Positions 4,036 to 23,087 of a stretch of 64,000 bases of DNA are shown piece by piece. Each line of letters starts with the position of its first letter. The stretch's first letter is position 1. Below the pieces are notes generated by a model. The model was not told the DNA's origin. It saw nothing but the letters and a program-made list of their open reading frames with translations, and made no database searches. The DNA is from Haliotis cracherodii. Its lineage: Eukaryota. The stretch lies in the NCBI RefSeq assembly GCF_022045235.1, contig NW_027266271.1, forward strand, positions 27,776,001 through 27,840,000, in the 5' to 3' direction. Both the position numbers and the translations under genes were made by a program.

Positions 4036-6288
4036 ATCCATGCACATCTCACCCCCCCTCCCGATGTACATCTCACCCCCTTCCCCATGCACATCTCACC
4101 CCCTCTCCATGTACATCTCACCCCCTCCCCATGTACATCTCACCCCCCTCCCCATGCACATCTCACCCCCCTCCCCATGCACATCTCACCCCCCTCCCAA
4201 TGTACATCTCACCCCCCTGCCCATGTACATCTCACCCCCCTCCCCATGCACATCTCACCCCCCTCCCCATGCACATCTCACCCCCCTCCCCATGTACATC
4301 TCACCCCCCTCCCCATGCACATCTCACCCCCTCCCCATGTACATCTCACCCCCCTCCCCAGGCACATCTCACCCCCTCCCCATGTACATCTCACCCCCCT
4401 CCCCATGTACATCTCACCCCCCTCCCCATGTACATCTCACCCCCCTCCCCATGTACATCTCACACCCACACACACACACCCACACCCACATCCCCACTCC
4501 ATCCATGTACATCTCACTCCCTCCCTACCCCCTCCCCATGTACATCTCACACACCCACACCCACACCCACACCCATACTTCATCCATGTACATCTCACCC
4601 CCTCCCCATGTACATCTCACCCTGCCACACCCACATCCCCACTCCACCCATGTACATCTCACTCCTCCCTACCCCAGCCATGTACATCTCACCCCTCCCT
4701 ACACCAGCCAGGTACATCTCACCCCTCCCTACCCCAGCCATGTACATCTCACCCCTTCCTACACCAGCCAGGTACATCTCACCCCTCCCTACCCCAGCCA
4801 GGTACATCTCACACCTCTCTACCCCAGCCAGGTACATCTCACCCCTCCCTACCCCAGCCATGTACATCTCACCCCTCCCTACCCCAGCCAGGTACATCTC
4901 AACCCTCCCTACCCCAGCCAGGTACATTTCACACCTCCCTACCCCAGCCATGTACATCTCACCCCTCCCTACCCCAGCCAGGTACATCTCACCCCTCCCT
5001 TCCCCATCCAGGTACATCTCACACCTCTCTACCCCAGCCAGGTACATCTCACCCCTCCCTACCCCAGCCATGTACATCTCACCCCTATACCTACCCAAGC
5101 CAGGTACATCTCAACCCTCCCTACACCAGCCATGTACATCTCACCCCTCCCTACCCCAGCCAGGTACATCTCACCCCTCCCTACCCCAGCCAGGTACATC
5201 TCACCCCTCCCTACCTACCCTAGCCAGGTACATCTCACCCCTCCCTACCCCAGCCAGGTACATCTCACCCCTCCCTACCCCAGCCAGGTACATTTCACAC
5301 CTCCCTACTCCAGCCATGTACATTTCACACCTCCCTACCCCAGCCATGTACATTTCACACCTCCCTACCCCAGCCATGTACATCTCACCCCTCCCTACAC
5401 CAGCCAGGTACATCTCACCCCTCCCTACCCCAGCCATGTACATTTCACACCTCCCTACCCCAGCCAGGTACATCTCACCCCACCCCCCTACCACCTACCC
5501 CAGCCATGTACATTTCACACCTCCCTACCCCAGCCATGTACATCTCACCCCTCCCTACACCAGCCAGGTACATCTCACCCCTCCCTACCCCAGCCATGTA
5601 CATTTCACACCTCCCTACACCAGCCAGGTACATCTCACCCCACCCCCCTACCACCTACCCCAGCCATGTACATTTCACACCTCCCTACCCCAGCCATGTA
5701 CATCTCACCCCTCCCTACACCAGCCAGGTACATCTCACCCCTCCCTACCCCAGCCATGTACATTTCACACCTCCCTACACCAGCCAGGTACATCTCACCC
5801 CACCCCCCTACCACCTACCCCAGCCATGTACATTTCACCCCTCCCTACCCCAGCCATGTACATTTCACACCTCCCTACCCCAGCCAGGTACATCTCACCC
5901 CTCCCTACCCCAGCCATGTACATTTCACACCTACCTCCCCCAGCCATGTACATCTCACCCCTCCCTACACCAGCCAGGTACATCTCACCCCTCCCTACCC
6001 CAGCCATGTACATTTCACACCTCCCTGCACCAGCCAGGTACATCTCACCCCTCTCTACCCTAGCCAGGTACATCTCACCCCTCCCTACACCAGCCAGGTA
6101 CATCTCACCCCTCCCTACCCCAGCCATGTACATTTCACACCTCCCTACCCCAGCCATGTACATCTCACCCCTCCCTACCCCAGCCATGTACATTTCACAC
6201 CTCCCTACCCCAGCCATGTACATCTCACCCCTCCCTACCCCAGCCATGTACATCTCACCCCTATACCTACCCAAGCCAGGTACATCTC
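4036..6288. repeat. C-rich compound minisatellite: 23-24-bp unit changing to a 30-bp unit (CAGCCAKGTACATYTCACCCCTCCCTACCC)
   Basis: Shared core GTACATCTCACCCC; source of the spurious 778- and 771-aa ORFs. Confidence 0.95.
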
Positions 6289-6745: not shown

Positions 6746-7324
6746 AATTCTTGCAACACATGCATTTCCGTTGTCTATCTACAGTGTGAACAGCATGACG
6801 TAAAAAGAAAACTACAAATTGGCTTGTTGTTCATGGGCTTCATAATTATCTTTTTTCAAATCATGACAGTTCATGAAATGGATGTTCCCGAGCAGGTACT
6901 GATGAGTATAAGGTAAAAAGTTACAACACCTCACCAGATGTTTTAATGGCATTAGTTTCCAAGTAAGCAATCATCTTCCCTAACACAAGCTTTTCAAATG
7001 AAAATATGGTTTATTGGCAAGCTACTGATTTCTTCCCCTACACAGATAAACACACTCCTCACGTACATGTTGTAGACTCCTGACATTTACTCATCACACT
7101 GAGCTTGATGTTCTTATCAGCTTCATCACAGAGTCCAACCCATACAAACAGGTCCTATATCATACTGAGCTGATATTGCTTGACATTTATAAATGAACAA
7201 TGAGATACTAGTGACAGTATTTTCTCGAATCTGTAAAGCATCAAGATGGTTTTCACTTGTTTTGTTCAAATCTCCAGCAATAATACACTTTCATCATGGA
7301 ATCAAACAGAACCTTTCTGTCCAT

Positions 7325-8205
7325 AAAAACAAGTCCTAAGTCCTACTTTTATTGCTTGATATTTATAAATGAATGATTAGTTTTAATGTGTATGTTTCCA
7401 ATCCACACACTAAAGCATGTTCAAAGCACTACAAAATGGATCAGTGTGCTCTCAAGTTTCATTCTCAGCTCCCTGGCAGCTTTGAGGTCATTGGTGTCAT
7501 CATAGCGCTTTCCACGAAGGTGTTCTTTCAGTTTAGGAAACAGGTGGAAATCACTTGGTGCCAGGTTTGGCAAGAATGGAGGGTGAGGAAGCCTACCAAC
7601 CCACATTGAAATACCCCTCAATTAGCTCTATCTTTTCTCTGGAAATGTCAGTTCTTTTTTTACATCTGATCAGAATTTAGAAACCCAACGAGCAGACATC
7701 TTATTCATCTGTAAATGTTCATGAGTAATAGTTTCAATGGATCCATGGCTTAGACCTGTGTCTTCCTCAAGTTTAGCAATGGTAATACGTCTCTATCTGA
7801 CAGTATAAGTTTTTCTATCTTCTTGATTGAATCTTCATTGATGGAAGTTATGGGACATCCATACCAAGGGTCATCATCAAGGCTTGCAGCCCAACGTGTA
7901 ACAGTGGATTAGCTAGGACACTTGTCCCCAAACACTTGTGACATGTGGTCATGAATTTCTTGGGGAGTACCTTTCTCTAAAGTAAACAGATGTGATGATT
8001 GCTCAGTACTCGTTCTTGTTCCATTTCTGTGTCCATTTGGGACCCTTATCATGTTCGACTGGTTGTCACTAATCTACAAACCGCCGCAACAGACCAAATA
8101 CACTTGCAATGAACTACTCGAACAATGTACTACATTGAGTGGGTCACTGTGTTATGGCCCATAGTTGAAAGTTAGTCAGGCTTAGAACTTTTTGACCAGC
8201 CCTCG
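7325..8205 (-). mobile_element. Mariner transposon remnant, internally deleted, transposase pseudogene
   Basis: Minus strand gives GTPQEIHDHMSQVFGDKCPS*STVTRW...HEHLQMNKMSARWVSK (HTH and WVP-like motif) and PHPPFLPNLAPSDFHLFPKLKEHLRG (YSPDLAPSD-like motif). Terminus TA-CGAGGGCTGGTCAAAAAGTTC at 8207; other TIR degraded. Confidence 0.9.
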
Positions 8206-8307
8206 TACATCTGCTTCAGTGTGGAGCAGGTAGGAATCCCTAGCAACACCAAGGATGATGAGTCAATTTGCCAAAAGCGGTCACCTATTCAACTACAACC
8301 AATCTTG

Positions 8308-8473
8308 GGGGCGGTTGGGTAGCCCCGTGGTTAAAGCGTTTGCTCGTCACGCCGAAGACCCAGGTTCGATTCCCGACATGGGTACAATGTGTGAAGCCCA
8401 TTTCTGGTGTCCCCCGTCGTGATATTGCTGGAATATTGTTAAAAGCGGCGTAAAACCAAACTCACTCACTCAT
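8308..8473 (+). mobile_element. tRNA-derived SINE family 1, full length
   Basis: A/B boxes, (ACTC)n tail, 14-bp TSD TACAACCAATCTTG (8294-8307 / 8474-8487). Confidence 0.95.
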
Positions 8474-9065
8474 TACAACCAATCTTGCTTTACTTAACCT
8501 GATTTGTGACCTGGACACAGGAACACATGACAATATTTTCAAAATCAGTAGAGAATCAAGATGGTTATCAATATCAAGAACTGTGTTTGGTCCAAATCTC
8601 CATGATTCATACACTCATTGTTTAGAACATTAGAATCTGAAGTGAGAATCAGTTATTACCACCGAGATCCACATCATGACTGATGGAGACATGGATGAAG
8701 CTGACACCATTGTGCAACATCTGGACATGTCAGTGCACTAGTTCCACAGATGGAGCCAGGAGGAGGGGTGATATACAGCCCATCCTGGTGAATACGGCAT
8801 GGTATTTTGTATCTAGTGATGAAATAATGTATTTATCCCAAAATATCAAATCAATATTGCACTCGAGTGAAATATCACTTTGTGTTGGAACTATTTCATC
8901 CTGCCTGAACTATGATATGGTGGCATGCACACATCTCTTGAAGGTTTGGCGACATGGGAAGCCAAGTTGTCTGACACATAGCGATACACATTCACATTTT
9001 AGAGTTACGACCCTTATCTGTGCAGGATCTGCTGAGTATGGATTTGAATACTAGACTTGACTTTA

Positions 9066-11538
9066 CAACTGCCTCTCATTGGGTGACACACCATGACTAG
9101 ACTGCCTCACATTGGGTGACAAGCCATGACTAGACTGCCTCACATTGGGTGACAGGCCATGACTAGACTGCCTCACATTGGGTGACAAGCCATGACTTGA
9201 CTGCCTCACAATGGGTGACAGGCCATGACTAGACTGCCTCACATTGGGTGACAAGCCATGACTTGACTGCCTCACATTGGGTGACAGGCCATGACTAGAC
9301 TGCCTCACATTGGGTGACAAGCCATGACTTGACTGCCTCACATTGGGTGACAGGCCATGACTTGACTGCCTCACATTGGGTGACAAGCCATGACTTGACT
9401 GCCTCACATTGGGTGACAGGCCATGACTAGACTGCCTCACATTGGGTGACAAGCCATGACTTGACTGCCTCACATTGGGTGACAGGCCATGACTAGACTG
9501 CCTCACATTGGGTGACAGGCCATGACTAGACTGCCTCACATTGGGTGACAGGCCATGACTAGACTGCCTCACATTGGGTGACAAGCCATGACTTGACTGC
9601 CTCACATTGGGTGACAAGCCATGACTTGACTGCCTCACATTGGGTGACAGGCCATGACTAGACTGCCTCACATTGGGTGACAGGCCATGACTAGACTGCC
9701 TCACACTGGGTGACAGGCCATGACTAGACTGCCTCACATTGGGTGACACACCATGACTAGACTGCCTCACATTGTGTGACAAGCCATGACTTGACTGCTT
9801 CACATTGTGTGACACACCATGACTTGACTGCCTCACATTGGGTGACACTCCATGACTTGACTGCCTCACATTGTGTGACAAGCCATGACTTGACTGCCTC
9901 ACATTGTGTGACAAGCCATGACTTGACTGCCTCACATTGGGTGACACTCCATGACTTGACTGCTTCACATTGGGTGACAAGCCATGACTTGACTGCCTCA
10001 CATTGTGTGACACACCATGACTTGACTGCCTCACATTGGGTCACAAGCCATGACTTGACTGCCTCACATTGTGTGACAAGCCATGACTTGACTGCCTCAC
10101 ATTGGGTGACACACCATGACTTGACTGCCTCACATTGGGTGACAAGCCATGACTTGACTGCCTCACATTGGGTGACAGGCCATGACTAGACTGCCTCACA
10201 TTGGGTGACAAGCCATGACTTGACTGCCTCACATTGGGTGACAGGCCATGACTAGACTGCCTCACATTGGGTGACAGGCCATGACTAGACTGCCTCACAT
10301 TGGGTGACAGGCCATGACTAGACTGCCTCACATTGGGTGACAAGCCATGACTTGACTGCCTCACATTGGGTGACAAGCCATGACTTGACTGCCTCACATT
10401 GGGTGACAGGCCATGACTAGACTGCCTCACATTGGGTGACAGGCCATGACTAGACTGCCTCACATTGGGTGACACACCATGACTAGACTGCCTCACATTG
10501 GGTGACACACCATGACTTGACTGCCTCACATTGGGTGACAGGCCATGACTAGACTGCCTCACATTGGGTCACAAGCCATGACTTGACTGCCTCACAATGG
10601 GTGACACACCATGACTTGACTGCCTCACATTGGGTGACAGGCCATGACTAGACTGCCTCACATTGGGTGACAGGCCATGACTAGACTGCCTCACATTGGG
10701 TGACAGGCCATGACTAGACTACCTCACATTGGGTGACACTCCATGACTAGACTGCCTCACATTGGGTGACAGGCCATGACTAGACTGCCTCACATTGGGT
10801 GACAGGCCATGACTAGACTGCCTCACATTGGGTGACAGGCCATGACTAGACTGCCTCACATTGGGTGACAGGCCATGACTAGACTGCCTCACATTGGGTG
10901 ACAGGCCATGACTAGACTGCCTCACATTGGGTGACAGGCCATGACTAGACTGCCTCACATTGGGGGACAGGCCATGACTTGACTGCCTCACATTGGGTGA
11001 CAGGCCATGACTAGACTGCCTCACATTGGGTGACAGGCCAAGACTTGACTGCCTCACATTGTGTGACAGGCCATGACTAGACTGCCTCACATTGTGTGAC
11101 AAGCCATGACTAGACTGCCTCACATTGGGTGACAGGCCATGACTAGACTGCCTCACATTGGGTGACACACCATGACTAGACTGCCTCACATTGGGTGACA
11201 GGCCATGACTTGACTGCCTCACATTGGGTGACAGGCCATGACTAGACTGCCTCACATTGGGTGACACACCATGACTAGACTGCCTCACATTGGGTGACAG
11301 GCCATGACTTGACTGCCTCACATTGGGTGACAGGCCATGACTAGACTGCCTCACATTGGGTGACACACCATGACTAGACTGCCTCACATTGGGTGACAGG
11401 CCATGACTTGACTGCCTCACATTGGGTGACAGGCCATGACTAGACTGCCTCACATTGGGTGACAGGCCATGACTTGACTGCCTCACAATGGGTGACACAC
11501 CATGACTTGACATTGCTCAAAGATTGCCTCACATTGGG
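9066..11538. repeat. Minisatellite, 33-bp unit (CCATGACTWGACTGCCTCACATTGGGTGACARG)
   Basis: ~74 tandem copies; source of the RQSSHGLSPNV ORFs. Confidence 0.97.
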
Positions 11539-18179: not shown

Positions 18180-19094
18180 ATATATGTTATTGTAAGTTGA
18201 AAACCTAATTCCAGACCACTGTCTTCCCAGCCTGTATTTAGTTTTGTCCAATAAAACATAACATTCTAACATGCATTCTATCTTTTTTTGCATTGGTGTC
18301 CATTTATGTTAGGGCCTGATCTAGACCAGTTTTAGTCCTTAGTAACCATTACTAACCACAAACAAAATGAAAAGTCGGAAGCTTGTACGAAGACCAGGGG
18401 ATCAATTTGGCTCAACCTTACTTTACTAAACAGTATGGGAGGCACTGATTACAGACATCTTACTTTCCAGCTATAGCAAGGAACATAATTGAGAAGCTCC
18501 ACAAGTGTAAGACGGCTAGGACGGAATGCAAGCACCACTGATCATTCCTTCACTTGTAATTATTTCATTACTGCTGAAACGTGAATCATCGGGATGAAGA
18601 CTCCAAAGGCTCACACTTGAGAAAATGAATACCCATTTGTTTGGTTTTTATGAATTCTCATTATTTTCATGCATGAAATCAATTGATGGAAATAATTTTC
18701 TTCAAATGGTTACAAAATGTTATTGTATTATCCAGAAGTCATTTTTTGTCAGCATAATTCAACTGCTAGGTTTCTTCTGCCGATTTGTATGTGCATACAT
18801 TCAGTGTAATTGCTCGGTAATCTTTGAAGAGCTTTGGCAGTCAATATAGAACATCATCAACTTTCTGTGTTTAACACTTTTATGTTTCAGTAAATGTTTA
18901 TTGCTATCTTCCAATGAATATTTTCTTCATAAATGCAATTTTTAAAACGCATTTCGTTGATAGCATAATTCAATCAAATACCCTACCTCTATTACATCAT
19001 AGCCATAAGATCCCATGTTGGCTGTTATCACACTTTAAAATATTTTAGATTTTCAACAGATGTCATCTTCACTACAAATATCTGTGAACAAATA

Positions 19095-19632
19095 CTGAAC
19101 CACCAAAATTCCCAGTCACTCAACCATCCAGTTCCCAGCCACTCAACCATCCAGTTCCCAACCACTCAACCATCCAGTTCCCAACCACTAAAACATCCAG
19201 TTCCCAAACACTCAACCATCCAGTTCCCAACTACTCAACCATCCAGTTCCCAACTACTCAACCATCCAGTTCCCAACCTCTCAACCATTCAGTTCCCAGC
19301 CACTCAACCATCCAGTTCCCAACCACTCAACCATCCAGTTCCCAGCCACTCAACCACCTAGTTCCCAGCCACTAAAACATCCAGTTCCCAAACACTCAAC
19401 CATCCAGTTCCCAACCACTCAACCACCCAATTCCCAGCCACTCAACCACCCAGTTCCAGGCAACTCAACCATCCAGTTCCCAACCACTCAACCATCCAGT
19501 TCAGCCACTCAGCCATCCAGTTCCCAGCCACTCAACCACCCAGTTCCCAGCAACTCAACCACCCAGTTCACAGCCACTTAACCATCCAGTTCCCAGCAAC
19601 TCAACCACCCAATTCCCAGCCACTAACACCCA
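19095..19632. repeat. Minisatellite, 23-bp unit (ACTCAACCATCCAGTTCCCARCC)
   Basis: ~23 tandem copies. Confidence 0.95.
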
Positions 19633-19869
19633 TCTATTTAGGCATAATGTTACAAGCTGAACAGGAAACCAGAAACTGCTAAGGGTATACTGTTGTAAAA
19701 TGACCTCTCTTATCTGCCTGTACATCCCCTCAGCCCCTGCAGCTCTTCCACCATCTGTGCCAAGCCTGTCCCCCACAATGAGCCATAGGGTTATGTAAAC
19801 TGTTGAGCAAGGGGGCTCTCTGTCTGGTTATCCTGTGCTGAGCCTGTCCCCCACAATGAGCCATAGGGT

Positions 19870-21819
19870 CACAGGGCCACGGATAGCCATACCAAACTGA
19901 CTGTACTGATTACATTAAAAAAAGAGAAGGGAGGACAACTCCACTGATCGAAAACCGAACAATTTTCTACCCCTCTATGCTGCAACCGCTATTTCAGTCA
20001 TTTCCGTGTTAATAAATTTTTTTTTAAAAAGCTAGGTTAAAACAAAAGTGTTTTAACTTCATGTTAAATCTCAAATTATTGCTACATTTATTTTTCCTTG
20101 ACTTATAATTAATGTGGAAGTTCAATGTTGTCGTTACGAACACCGAGACGCCCGGAAGTGCTACTCGCTCCGTATGTTACTCACTAAAACATGCGAAAAC
20201 AATGGCGACACAACCAAGCGACTCAATCATAAATGCGGCTGTTTCTGGGCATAATTTCCTTATTTTAGGCCAGGCAGGGACAGGCAAAAGTCACGAGCTA
20301 AGGAAAATTGCATCTGTACTAGGAAAAAGACCGTTCAACTTTGTGCATCAACGGGTTTGGCGGCATCGCTTTTGCCGGGTGTTACAATTCATTGTTTCGC
20401 GTTATTTATCTGAATTCTTTTTTATTTTATTGTTTATAATAGTGTATTATAATTAGGCCAATGTTTTGCATGTTTATTGGTTCATGAATCTATTTTCACT
20501 ATTTGTGATGCAAGATATTATTGGATCTAGGGGTGAAATTATTATTAGGCCTATACTGACTATAGGTATAGTGTGGCTATCCATGGCCCTGTGAAGGTAT
20601 ACAAAAGTTTCAGGCATGCTATATAAATAATCTTATTGATGGATTGAAAAAGAAGAAAATTATTGAGAGTGAATATTTGTTTAATAATGGATTTCTGCAT
20701 AATTTCTTAAAGTAATAACAGTTTACTTTTAGATTGATGCTTTTGTATCTGTGATTTACATCATCCCTAATTTACATGAATTCACATTGTGTGATGTGAT
20801 ATTGATGAGTTAATTGTTTTGCAGTTAATAAAATATCTCATTTATGTATCATAAATCTGTTGTGTTGTGATATGATGATGCAAGTAATAGTCAAAATATG
20901 TGAAGCTGTCATATTTACAGTCACTGGGCCATGAATAGCTTCTTGTTATTGGCAATCTGTAGGCCTGTGTACACAGTGATCTCAATTCCATGATACAGTA
21001 ATTGGGTACAACAGATGACGAGCTACTAAATTACTAAGAGTAGAATAGTATACTAGTGCAATTCATACACATTTAACACTTCTTGATGGTTGCATTGAAC
21101 ACCAAGGTTGGAAAAATTTAACTATGCAAGTAATATTTTATCTAATTTAATGAAGTGGAATATATATATACACATATATGTATAAGTATTTTATTATGAA
21201 TCTACAATAACCCATAACCCTATAAATTGATGTATTGCTGTATTTCCCCAACCATAGATTAATCATGCTGAAAACATCATGCCATTTGTGCGCCCTTATC
21301 TAGACCAGAGTTCAATAATATTTCTCCACTTATTTGGTTCAACTGACATTTAGACATAAACATTTGGCTATAATCTAACAGTAAATAATGTTTTTACCAG
21401 CTGACAATCTTGCAGAACGGAGGATTTGCCATTTTCTCAATGTAGTGGTAAGCTTAGCAGACAAAGTTATAAAAAACGCCAACGGCGATTAGCAATTATT
21501 TTTCGACCAATCGGAGACGATCTTTGGAGAGTGGTATGTGAAGCGAGTACAACTTCCGGGCGTCTCGATGTTCGTTGTTCGCTGTTTACTTTTTGATACG
21601 AAATTGTGATTAAACTATGTACAAGGTAAATACTTTTACGGGTGCAAAATCTTGTTAAAGTTATATTTGACAAACTACTAGTCAGTTGTAAACCGAAATA
21701 CATCAGACTGTTTTGGGATGGTAACATTGTTCGGTTTTCCATCAGCGGAGGTGTCCTCTCTTCTCTTTTTTTAATGTAATCAGTACAGTCAGTATAGTAT
21801 GGCTATCCGTGGCCCTGTG
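19870..21819. mobile_element. Non-autonomous TIR DNA transposon with 8-bp TSD, carrying a PIF1-helicase fragment
   Basis: 94-bp TIRs (19870-19963 / 21726-21819, 6 mismatches), CACAG...CTGTG ends, perfect TSD CATAGGGT (19862-19869 / 21820-21827), second inverted block 20136-20169 / 21542-21575. Confidence 0.95.
20202..20402 (+). pseudogene. PIF1-family (SF1B) DNA helicase N-terminal fragment, frameshifted
   Basis: MATQPSDSIINAAVSGHNFLILGQAGTGKS (Walker A), then after a frameshift KTVQLCASTGLAASLLPGVTIHCF (motifs Ia ASTGxAA and Ib TIH). Confidence 0.85.
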
Positions 21820-23087
21820 CATAGGGTTATGTAAACTGTTGAGGAAGGGGGCCCTCTGTCCGGTTATCCTGTGCCGAGCACAGCATGTTGAAAAGGAGCA
21901 GCCATGCTGTGGCTCTTAACATATTCCAACAACAAAGAATTGGTCATGATTTGCTTATGAACTGCAGTTCAGCTAAAATACCAAATATTAATGATTTGGC
22001 TGATTAGCCTAGACAATGGCACTGATTTCTTAGTTACCTTGGTGACAGATGTAGTCATTTAGAACACTGCTGGTTTGTCAGTAATTGAGGGGAACACTGT
22101 TTGAAACAATTGAGTCCAGGAGTTCTACAGACGTAATTGAATGCTTAAGTGGGAGACAGATTGCCAGTTTAGATCGCCTTCCAGGAGGAAGATCCTCCAC
22201 AAACATATATCAAGTTTTGTGAGGAAGACTTTGATATAGGCTGGTGGACGCTCTTACCTTAGGAATATGAGCTGTATGATACGCAGTAGGAATGCATACT
22301 GGGTTTATGATATAAACTAATAAATTTGAATGCAATATTTGAAAAACAATTATTTTTTATTGGTACGTCAAGTGTTTAAACTTTGCTAGCATGCTGAAAC
22401 TACATCCAGAAAGTTTTTGTTTTAAGTTTCAGTAAAACTACAACATGTGAAAAGGTCATACTCATAGTTTTCTTAGCTGTTAATGGAGAACATTATCATG
22501 TGTCAGACACAACCTTGGGGCACAGTTTCCGTGTAGAAGCCACAATGTTTTCAGATTTTCTGTGTCATGGAAACACAGCCTATGGCACATTTATTGTGAA
22601 GAAATATGACTCTTTGTGCAGACACTTCAGACAGTTTACCTTCTCAAAGATCTTTCAGAAGAATATACTAAGTGCCAAGGGTTGGCCACATGGATATAAA
22701 TAGCACCATCTCGTTCAAAACCAGAACTGTCAATAAACAAATTCCAAGCTGTCGAAGGCCGACATGACATTATAAAGTTTATTCATGAAAACAATAGGGG
22801 AACAAGTCTAACTGATACAGAAGCTGGTAAACATGAACTATAATTCCCACAAACATGAGAAAACACCCAAACACAACCAAGTGTCATTATCTGCCTGTGA
22901 AACTTGAGATATGGACACTTTGTTGCGAACCTCATTAACAGGAGCAGATGACAATAGGCACAATCTATGCGTCAGTTTCTGAGGACCAGTATTGAACATC
23001 GTGCCTGAGCTGTTGGGATGCTCAAGACACGTTATAGTCAACATTTACGCTTTACTGGAAGTGATTGGGAGACTGGCAATGGTACAA

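Follow-up and report, generated by a model that had tools for sequence, protein, structure and literature searches.

The stretch analysed here, referred to throughout as the window, comprises 64,000 nucleotides of the Haliotis cracherodii genome (contig NW_027266271.1, positions 27,776,001 to 27,840,000; C8:27776001-27840000 in the coordinates used below), and at positions 19870-21819 it holds a 1.95-kb transposable element in which the 5' end of a PIF1-like helicase gene lies between terminal inverted repeats. The element begins with CACAGGG and ends with CCCTGTG, its inverted arms span 97 nt and are 93% complementary in a repeat scan of the window, and it is flanked on both sides by a perfect 8-bp target-site duplication, CATAGGGT (Table 1). 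A preliminary description, prepared from the letters of the sequence, had reported paired inverted repeats with CACAG/CTGTG ends and an 8-bp duplication; the termini and the duplication can be read directly, and only the length of the repeats, given there as 94 bp, had to be corrected. The insertion occurred within tandem units of ~78 bp, and the adjacent uninterrupted unit reads GAGCCATAGGGTTATG, providing a paralogous empty site from which it is clear that the 8 bp represent a true duplication. Two to three of these 78-bp units flank the transposon, at 19755-19869 and 21820-21879, and a further tandem array of about 28 units of 23 bp each occupies 19040-19681, just upstream of the element.

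The helicase frame opens at an ATG behind the left arm, reads MATQPSDSIINAAVSGHNFLILGQAGTGKSHELRKIASVLGK and includes the Walker A motif GQAGTGKS; after ...SVLGK a one-base slip intervenes, the reading continues as TVQLCASTGLAASLLPGVTIH, and the frame ends at a deletion junction, with only the first ~65 codons of a gene for a PIF1-like helicase left in the window. The N-terminus with its Walker A motif and single frameshift were thus correctly recognised from the outset. Taken by itself, the fragment matches the Pfam PIF1 domain weakly (E-value 0.045), whereas the same exon in a full-length copy of the element reaches 2.6e-27, and its assignment to PIF1 therefore rests on the longer copies.

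These copies came to light in a genome-wide search of the 1.18-Gb assembly with the element end, a step that the preliminary description had recommended. The end sequence has at least 50 genome matches, which pair into elements ranging from miniature forms of about 160 bp up to one 9.4-kb copy (C8:23969845-23979272, equivalent to L031:201-9628 and called L031 below) that resides on the same chromosome as the window and carries both a PIF1 helicase and a transposase gene. The 8-bp flanks match in 11 copies (perfectly in 10, at seven of eight positions in one), with no obvious target motif; given these flanks and the number of end matches, the inverted ends are not a product of chance. Every deleted copy is colinear with L031, and the window element can be placed on it in its entirety (positions 1-529, 6758-7142, 8007-8208 and 8616-9428, counted in the orientation of the helicase), as expected of the deletion derivative that it had been taken for. 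The deletion junctions display overlaps (microhomology) of 0-9 nt, and two of them are each common to two copies at different loci, which implies that deleted forms continued to transpose. The helicase remnant is 93% identical to the corresponding L031 exon and lies, in all copies, at an equal distance from the same inverted repeat. What the window copy retains is just both ends, both putative promoter regions, the 5' end of the helicase gene and exon 1 of the transposase gene, and it can be mobile only with proteins supplied in trans. Because it differs from L031 by 3.2% substitutions (42 of 51 CpGs are kept) and is rich in CpG amid CpG-poor surroundings (observed/expected ratio of 0.76 versus 0.26-0.34 in the flanks), the window copy is a fairly recent insertion in a CpG-depleted genome, in agreement with the earlier judgement of its age.

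Table 1. Features of the element in the window and of its immediate borders (window coordinates)
Feature	Position	Strand	Remarks
Left target-site duplication, CATAGGGT	19862..19869	.	uninterrupted site visible in the adjacent tandem unit
Left terminal inverted repeat, starting CACAGGGCC	19870..19966	+	repeat pair I1; at least 50 genome matches
ETS-like motif CCCGGAAGTG, 5' of the helicase ATG	20151..20160	+	in the 53-nt subterminal inverted repeat I2; putative promoter
Helicase exon A remnant	20202..20401	+	ATG at 20202, Walker A at 20268-20291, frameshift after ...SVLGK; truncated by the internal deletion, junction near 20401
Segment equivalent to 6758-7142 of the full-length copy	20403..20788	+	96.9% identity; non-coding in the full-length copy, within transposase intron 1
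Internal third copy of the 28-nt terminus (...GGCCCTGTG)	20566..20593	-	repeats D4 and I3; in every long family copy
Right subterminal 'tail'	20786..21722	+	matches full-length copy positions 8007-8208 and 8616-9331
Transposase mini exon 1 (ATGGCAAATCC...CAGCTG)	21398..21432	-	GTAAAA donor next to it, at 21392-21397
Inverted copy of the CCGGAAGT motif, 5' of transposase exon 1	21552..21561	-	repeat I2; putative promoter
Right terminal inverted repeat, ending ...CCCTGTG	21723..21819	-	repeat pair I1
Right target-site duplication, CATAGGGT	21820..21827	.	as for the left copy

Protein searches of L031, made exon by exon, reveal three genes, encoding a transposase, a PIF1-family helicase and a protein with a PHD finger. 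The helicase gene consists of three exons on one strand (8744-9306, 8359-8534 and 5168-5640), with canonical GT/AG sites and matching phases, and its product is a bare PIF1-family core of about 405 amino acids (aa) that matches, in addition to Pfam PIF1, the Pif1_2B domain (6.9e-8). Its motifs are readily legible (GQAGTGKS, ASTGLAAS, DEISM...GDFNQLKPV, HRQ, TVHKSQG and GVAIGRA), and these helicase motifs, the PIF1 signature region and the 2B domain place it in the PIF1 family (SF1B). The best relatives of solved structure are yeast and human PIF1 (E-values of 1e-24 to 1e-35), whereas the match to Helraiser, a Helitron helicase, is weak (2.5e-6 and 2e-4). The proposal that the family itself encodes a PIF1 helicase is hence borne out by an intact gene in L031, and the same gene recurs in the related families described below. 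Directly downstream of the helicase lies the gene of the PHD protein, which measures 625 aa in L031 (550-625 aa across the elements) and bears a C-terminal PHD finger (Pfam 7e-7); an Atlas look-up placed it in nothing but a weak PHD cluster (score 0.76), and a sequence search returned four distant matches. A SAP-like stretch seen by eye in this protein finds no support in Pfam. The transposase is specified by a 721-aa open frame on the strand opposite to the helicase. In the assembly, this frame ends at L031:8013, and the motif RFNSDIIENHFCQARG, which aligns with the third catalytic residue, falls in the next frame; all four read sets (three of probable RNA, one of DNA) contain one G more than the assembly after L031:8004, the shift being either real in this copy or due to a base mis-called in the assembly.

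The transposase can be classified from several directions. The Pfam domain TNP-like_RNaseH_N (PF21787) is matched above its cutoff both by L031 (3.3e-7) and by its relative in a second family, represented by the C18 element (8.2e-14). A phmmer search of the Protein Data Bank (PDB) with a single transposase gave no match and a profile search was needed; the profile of 17 transposase sequences matches the Drosophila P transposase 6P5A in three colinear stretches that bring the D, D and E motifs into register (FDEM/hDEt, SDxG/qDGg and DIVEhFF/DivEnvF; E-value 7.6e-8). When the AlphaFold model of the transposase (pLDDT of 74) was submitted to Foldseek, 6PE2/6P5A were retrieved with an E-value of 4e-16, and its VIA-align superposition on 6PE2 extends over 334 residues with a Z score of 28.4 and an rmsd of 3.4 A; other folds matched are those of Transib (Z of 8-10) and Hermes (Z of 7.8). 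The aligned chain residues of 6PE2, 200-558, take in the insertion (GTP-binding) domain, and the D-to-E spacing of about 230 aa is as in P, the sequence identity to the P transposase being about 16-18%. Residues 1-72 of the model match the RFX DNA-binding domain 1DP7 (Z of 9.5, rmsd of 2.4), the transposase profile matches the DNA-binding domain of RFX5 weakly (E-value 0.039), and neither the L031 nor the C18 transposase matches the THAP zinc finger in Pfam. Based on the Pfam, 6P5A profile, fold and 1DP7 matches, the protein is predicted to join a P-type catalytic part to an RFX-type winged helix in the place where P and THAP9 carry a THAP domain. With its catalytic domain, the 8-bp duplication and termini of the CANRG type (CACAGGG in the family of the window, CACAGGC in that of C18), the element shows the hallmarks of the P superfamily, so that of the two affiliations offered by the preliminary description, P and Mutator, the former is upheld by Pfam, profile and fold and the latter falls with the length of the duplication.

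The N-terminal half specific to this clade of transposases has 71 relatives (E-value up to 0.001) among 1.84 billion cluster representatives; the clade is thus real, though sparsely sampled. Homologues that carry a species name belong to bivalves and a sea cucumber. The N-terminal ~220 residues alone (the RFX-like domain plus the beta-rich domain that follows it) are also encountered by themselves, some in open frames, at C78:50493258-50493908, C14:9623578-9624147, C4:38372091-38372651 and C1:12203104-12203740. Such isolated matches could represent deletion derivatives, or else free-standing DNA-binding proteins of transposase origin.

The second family is represented by the C18 element itself (C18:7004049-7011904, L037:5050 to L038:3004; 7,856 bp), which has 338-bp inverted repeats that are 99.4% identical, CACAGGC termini and the 8-bp duplication GTCTCAGT, and holds the same three genes as L031. 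The transposases of the two elements are 32-35% identical, the helicases about 41% and the PHD proteins 23%; the two PHD proteins are homologous along their full length (E-value 7e-22). Another copy, on C78, possesses 117-bp inverted repeats with no clean target duplication at its ends. Throughout the genome, a transposase of the clade was found within 10 kb at seven of the eight loci that carry this type of helicase. The exception, C2:33687918-33700147, displays two helicase matches of up to 41% identity, one of them in a 391-aa open frame, and no transposase of the clade was detected within 10 kb of them. P-like transposases that are more distantly related (frames of 864-898 aa, 28-30% identity) have no helicase nearby. 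Scanning metagenomes with the transposase profile yielded 26 contigs, 12 of which also carry the helicase gene and/or the PHD gene; most of the remainder have little DNA beyond the transposase gene.

Two gene orders can be distinguished. In type 1, typified by C18, the transposase gene runs rightwards and is followed by the PHD gene and the helicase gene running leftwards; in type 2, typified by L031, the order is the PHD gene with the last helicase exon, transposase exon 2, and helicase exons B and A. A 4.3-kb contig from the DNA read set X5, which comes from another organism, is about 97% identical and has the type-2 order. The type-2 elements form one clade in the transposase tree (SH-aLRT 100), and the helicase tree recovers this clade (97) along with the type-1 groups L050/L055/L065 (95) and C18/C67 (93). 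That the two trees recover the same three groups shows that both genes diverged together, and such co-divergence over several families and two gene orders marks the helicase as an ancestral gene and not a one-time cargo. Judged by these phylogenies, the helicase is thus an old, integral gene of this transposon lineage.

The arrangement of the genes in L031 deserves attention in its own right. In C18, the coding sequence of the transposase opens with a mini exon of 26 nt, ATGACAGAATCAAAATTATTTTCTTG, which lies just within the inverted repeat, is followed by the donor GTAAGT and joins L037:5853, splitting a TGG codon. Its counterpart in L031 is exon 1 at 588-622 (ATGGCAAATCAT...CAGCTG, then GTAAAA), and the acceptor of exon 2 lies at 5879/5880, with a TGG codon split as in C18. 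Intron 1 of the L031 transposase gene is accordingly 5.3 kb long and accommodates an internal copy of the terminus and, on the other strand, the PHD gene together with the last helicase exon; conversely, the last helicase intron, of 2.7 kb, contains transposase exon 2. In the lineage of the window element, the transposase and helicase genes are therefore predicted to be interleaved, each lying within an intron of the other. Exon 1 of the transposase and its donor are kept in 11 of the 12 copies checked. Both ends of the element contain inverted copies of an ETS-like CCGGAAGT motif, located 5' of the respective first exons, and these motifs would be suited to act as inward-facing promoters.

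Evidence for expression comes from the read runs X1-X3, which belong to a single study of one organism and can only be presumed to be RNA, and whose contigs were placed with L031:201-3429 and the window element left out. At an identity of at least 99%, these probable RNA contigs cover only L031:5877-8606, that is, transposase exon 2 and the 3' region, and it is this patchy cover that speaks for their origin from RNA. At the acceptor (L031:5877-5880) the contigs run into sequence absent from L031, and this foreign leader maps uniquely to C34:31443831-31443860 and C34:31423179-31423211, each of these stretches being followed by a GT donor (loci L047:1470-1530, C34:31443800-31443860, and L048:1501-1533, C34:31423179-31423211; two samples). 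Since the contigs join the leading exons of a gene on C34, a different chromosome, at the AG acceptor, the exon-2 acceptor of the transposase gene is evidently used. An in-frame TAA is present just upstream of the joint, and no transposase copy is found near these C34 sites in this assembly. The simplest reading would be exon trapping by a full-length copy that sits, in other animals, in an intron of the C34 gene, i.e. an insertion polymorphism.

Taken together, these data make it very probable that the element in the window is a young, non-autonomous, internally deleted copy of a P-superfamily transposon whose autonomous form carries a transposase, a PIF1 helicase and a PHD protein. A few observations pull the other way. 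The probable RNA contigs show no clear helicase or PHD transcript, the PHD gene and most of the helicase gene being uncovered, and the native splice between transposase exons 1 and 2 is unseen in them, the only splices being those from foreign upstream exons. In the sole full-length copy of the assembly, a frameshift breaks the transposase shortly before the motif of the third catalytic residue, a complete pair of ends is absent from all the metagenome contigs examined, and host PIF1 and the Helitron helicases of this genome were left out of the trees. Finally, that the helicase and the PHD protein take part in transposition is something we infer.

What might a cut-and-paste transposon gain from a helicase of its own? 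DDE transposons of this kind are thought to rely on host repair for refilling the donor gap, the step that decides whether they gain copies. Excision of a P element leaves a double-strand gap, which is refilled from the sister or the homologue by synthesis-dependent strand annealing, and aborted synthesis gives rise to internal deletions; PIF1, in turn, promotes the migration of D-loops by Pol-delta during the long-tract synthesis of break-induced or synthesis-dependent repair. The near-identical, promoter-like ends would drive the helicase gene from one side and the transposase gene from the other, with the transposase transcript starting at mini exon 1 just inside the inverted repeat, and excision and reinsertion by the transposase would proceed as in the P element. 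In the reading preferred here, the helicase would aid the homology-directed refilling of the donor gap, restoring elements of 8-9 kb after excision and turning excision into a net gain. The PHD protein would probably tether the machinery to chromatin, and its PHD finger also suggests a part in the choice of targets. The abundant internal-deletion copies with microhomology fit this repair route, but they do not imply that the helicase is involved in it, and refilling of the donor gap through D-loop migration is proposed here only tentatively, as a possibility that may well prove wrong.

A competing role for the helicase, which we regard as unlikely while deserving of consideration, is in the transposition reaction itself, at the transposon ends or in the transpososome, where it might unpair the ends for the long staggered cuts that typify P transposase or clear structures or proteins from ends or targets. 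Helicases of the PIF1 family open duplexes and G-quadruplexes and remove proteins from DNA, and a bare core devoid of targeting domains would fit recruitment by the transposase or the PHD protein. The Drosophila P transposase, however, needs no helicase in vitro, and the many deletion copies with microhomology at their junctions indicate that gap repair across long elements is limiting and error-prone, which favours a role in repair. It could also be argued that the helicase has no role in transposition whatsoever and is a passenger, a copy of host PIF1 that a single transposon family picked up. DNA transposons commonly capture genes, and the element helicase is nearer to cellular PIF1 than to Helitron helicases. 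What renders this improbable is that the same helicase lineage accompanies at least three diverged transposase groups in two gene orders, in this genome and in 11 unrelated metagenome contigs, with a tree that mirrors that of the transposase; that young copies preserve its reading frames, motifs and splice sites, at an amino-acid identity of about 40% between families; and that it starts directly behind the inverted repeat in both families, as a core gene would.

Two further alternatives concern the identity of the element rather than the use of its helicase. The hAT superfamily likewise makes 8-bp duplications, and inverted repeats of 97-338 bp recall Mutator or Foldback elements. An affiliation with either hAT or Mutator is nonetheless very improbable, considering that the fold score for the P transposase far exceeds that for Hermes, a hAT member, that the Pfam and PDB profile matches are to the P type only, and that Pfam scans of the elements detected no MULE or hAT dimerisation domain. 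Mutator is rejected by a duplication of 8 bp instead of 9-11 bp and by the P-type transposase, and hAT, which fits in duplication length, by its missing Pfam domains and the Hermes score. Long inverted repeats occur inside the P superfamily as well, as illustrated by Galileo (PMC3573991). Lastly, the window fragment might be a piece of a nested Helitron/Helentron, or of host PIF1, that happens to lie between unrelated inverted repeats, and the genome does hold many frames of 2,600-3,200 aa with a PIF1-like domain, presumably of the Helitron type. These frames, however, are only 31-38% identical to the element helicase, no Rep domain was detected anywhere in the elements by Pfam scans, the match to Helraiser is far weaker than that to cellular PIF1, and the 93% identity of the fragment to the L031 exon, with its constant spacing from the same inverted repeat, leaves this idea, which the preliminary description had itself raised as an objection, with practically no credibility. 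Dozens of the long frames are uninterrupted (e.g. C2:17198252-17199508, C9:22248169-22249422 and C1:78133972-78135228); they presumably represent RepHel genes of Helitrons/Helentrons, several of which look intact.

How does the P-superfamily transposon compare with known systems? With Drosophila P and THAP9 it shares the catalytic fold, the D/D/E motifs, 8-bp duplications, CANRG-type termini and a wealth of deletion derivatives, and it differs from them in the RFX-type winged helix that replaces the THAP zinc finger, in its two extra conserved genes, and, with respect to the P element, in its size (8-9 kb versus 2.9 kb) and in its inverted repeats of 97-338 bp with promoter-like motifs. Galileo and 1360 likewise combine a P-type transposase with long terminal inverted repeats, but neither a helicase nor a PHD gene is reported for Galileo, whose duplications are 7 bp long. 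Helitrons and Helentrons resemble it in being mobile elements that encode an SF1B helicase of the PIF1 family; there, however, a Rep HUH nuclease and the helicase form one fusion protein, in rolling-circle elements without inverted repeats or target duplications, whereas here the helicase has a separate small gene of its own in a DDE transposon that has inverted repeats and 8-bp duplications and lacks a Rep domain. That a cut-and-paste DDE transposon can have a helicase gene next to its transposase has a precedent in AcademH, likened here by description only, which belongs to another transposase superfamily, carries a helicase of a different family and makes shorter target duplications. By analogy only, Transib/ProtoRAG with its RAG2-like partner also pairs a DDE transposase with a second protein that has a PHD finger and shows CACAG-like termini, but its fold is matched far less well (see above), its duplications are 5 bp, and the PHD protein described here is devoid of a kelch propeller and unrelated in sequence.

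In mobile DNA, PIF1-family helicases are textbook markers of rolling-circle Helitrons. Heringer and Kuhn, in the abstract of their article, treat the PIF1-like helicases of transposons as a Helitron trait (PMC8788227). Searches of the full-text literature, which did not extend to Repbase and Dfam, turned up no account of a P-type element bearing an RFX domain, a PHD gene or a helicase of the PIF1 type; the gene set is thus new to the literature searched, with real doubt as to whether it has already been catalogued in these databases. A P-type lineage that has kept its own PIF1 helicase and PHD protein through deep divergence would mean that transposons have recruited this helicase family twice, independently, and would give direct access to the ways in which a transposon can influence the repair of double-strand breaks. 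For annotation, it means that PIF1-like fragments beside inverted repeats in the genomes of molluscs and other invertebrates should be classed neither as Helitrons nor as paralogues of host PIF1. The exchange of THAP for RFX would show P transposases to be modular in their DNA-binding domain, and the interleaved antisense gene pair is an unusual arrangement that merits a look at the transcript level. Perhaps all these features belong to a single picture, that of an old, hitherto undescribed P-superfamily clade of marine invertebrates with RFX in place of THAP and its own PIF1 helicase and PHD reader, made self-copying by helicase-driven gap synthesis, with mutually nested antisense genes in one sub-clade, and still mobile in this species; in its entirety, this picture is doubtful.

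Two minor features of the family concern its internal DNA. The internal copy of the 28-nt terminus (L031:2683-2710) has AAGGTATA behind it in every case; it may represent the former right end of an ancestral element whose inverted repeats measured ~28 bp and which later acquired an inverted duplicate of its left end, and it could serve as an alternative end. The 864 bp at L031:1623-2486 are absent at the same point from all deletion derivatives and include, at 1625-1795, a palindrome with a perfect stem of 68 nt, and this segment is probably a private, nested, foldback-like miniature element in intron 1 of the transposase gene.

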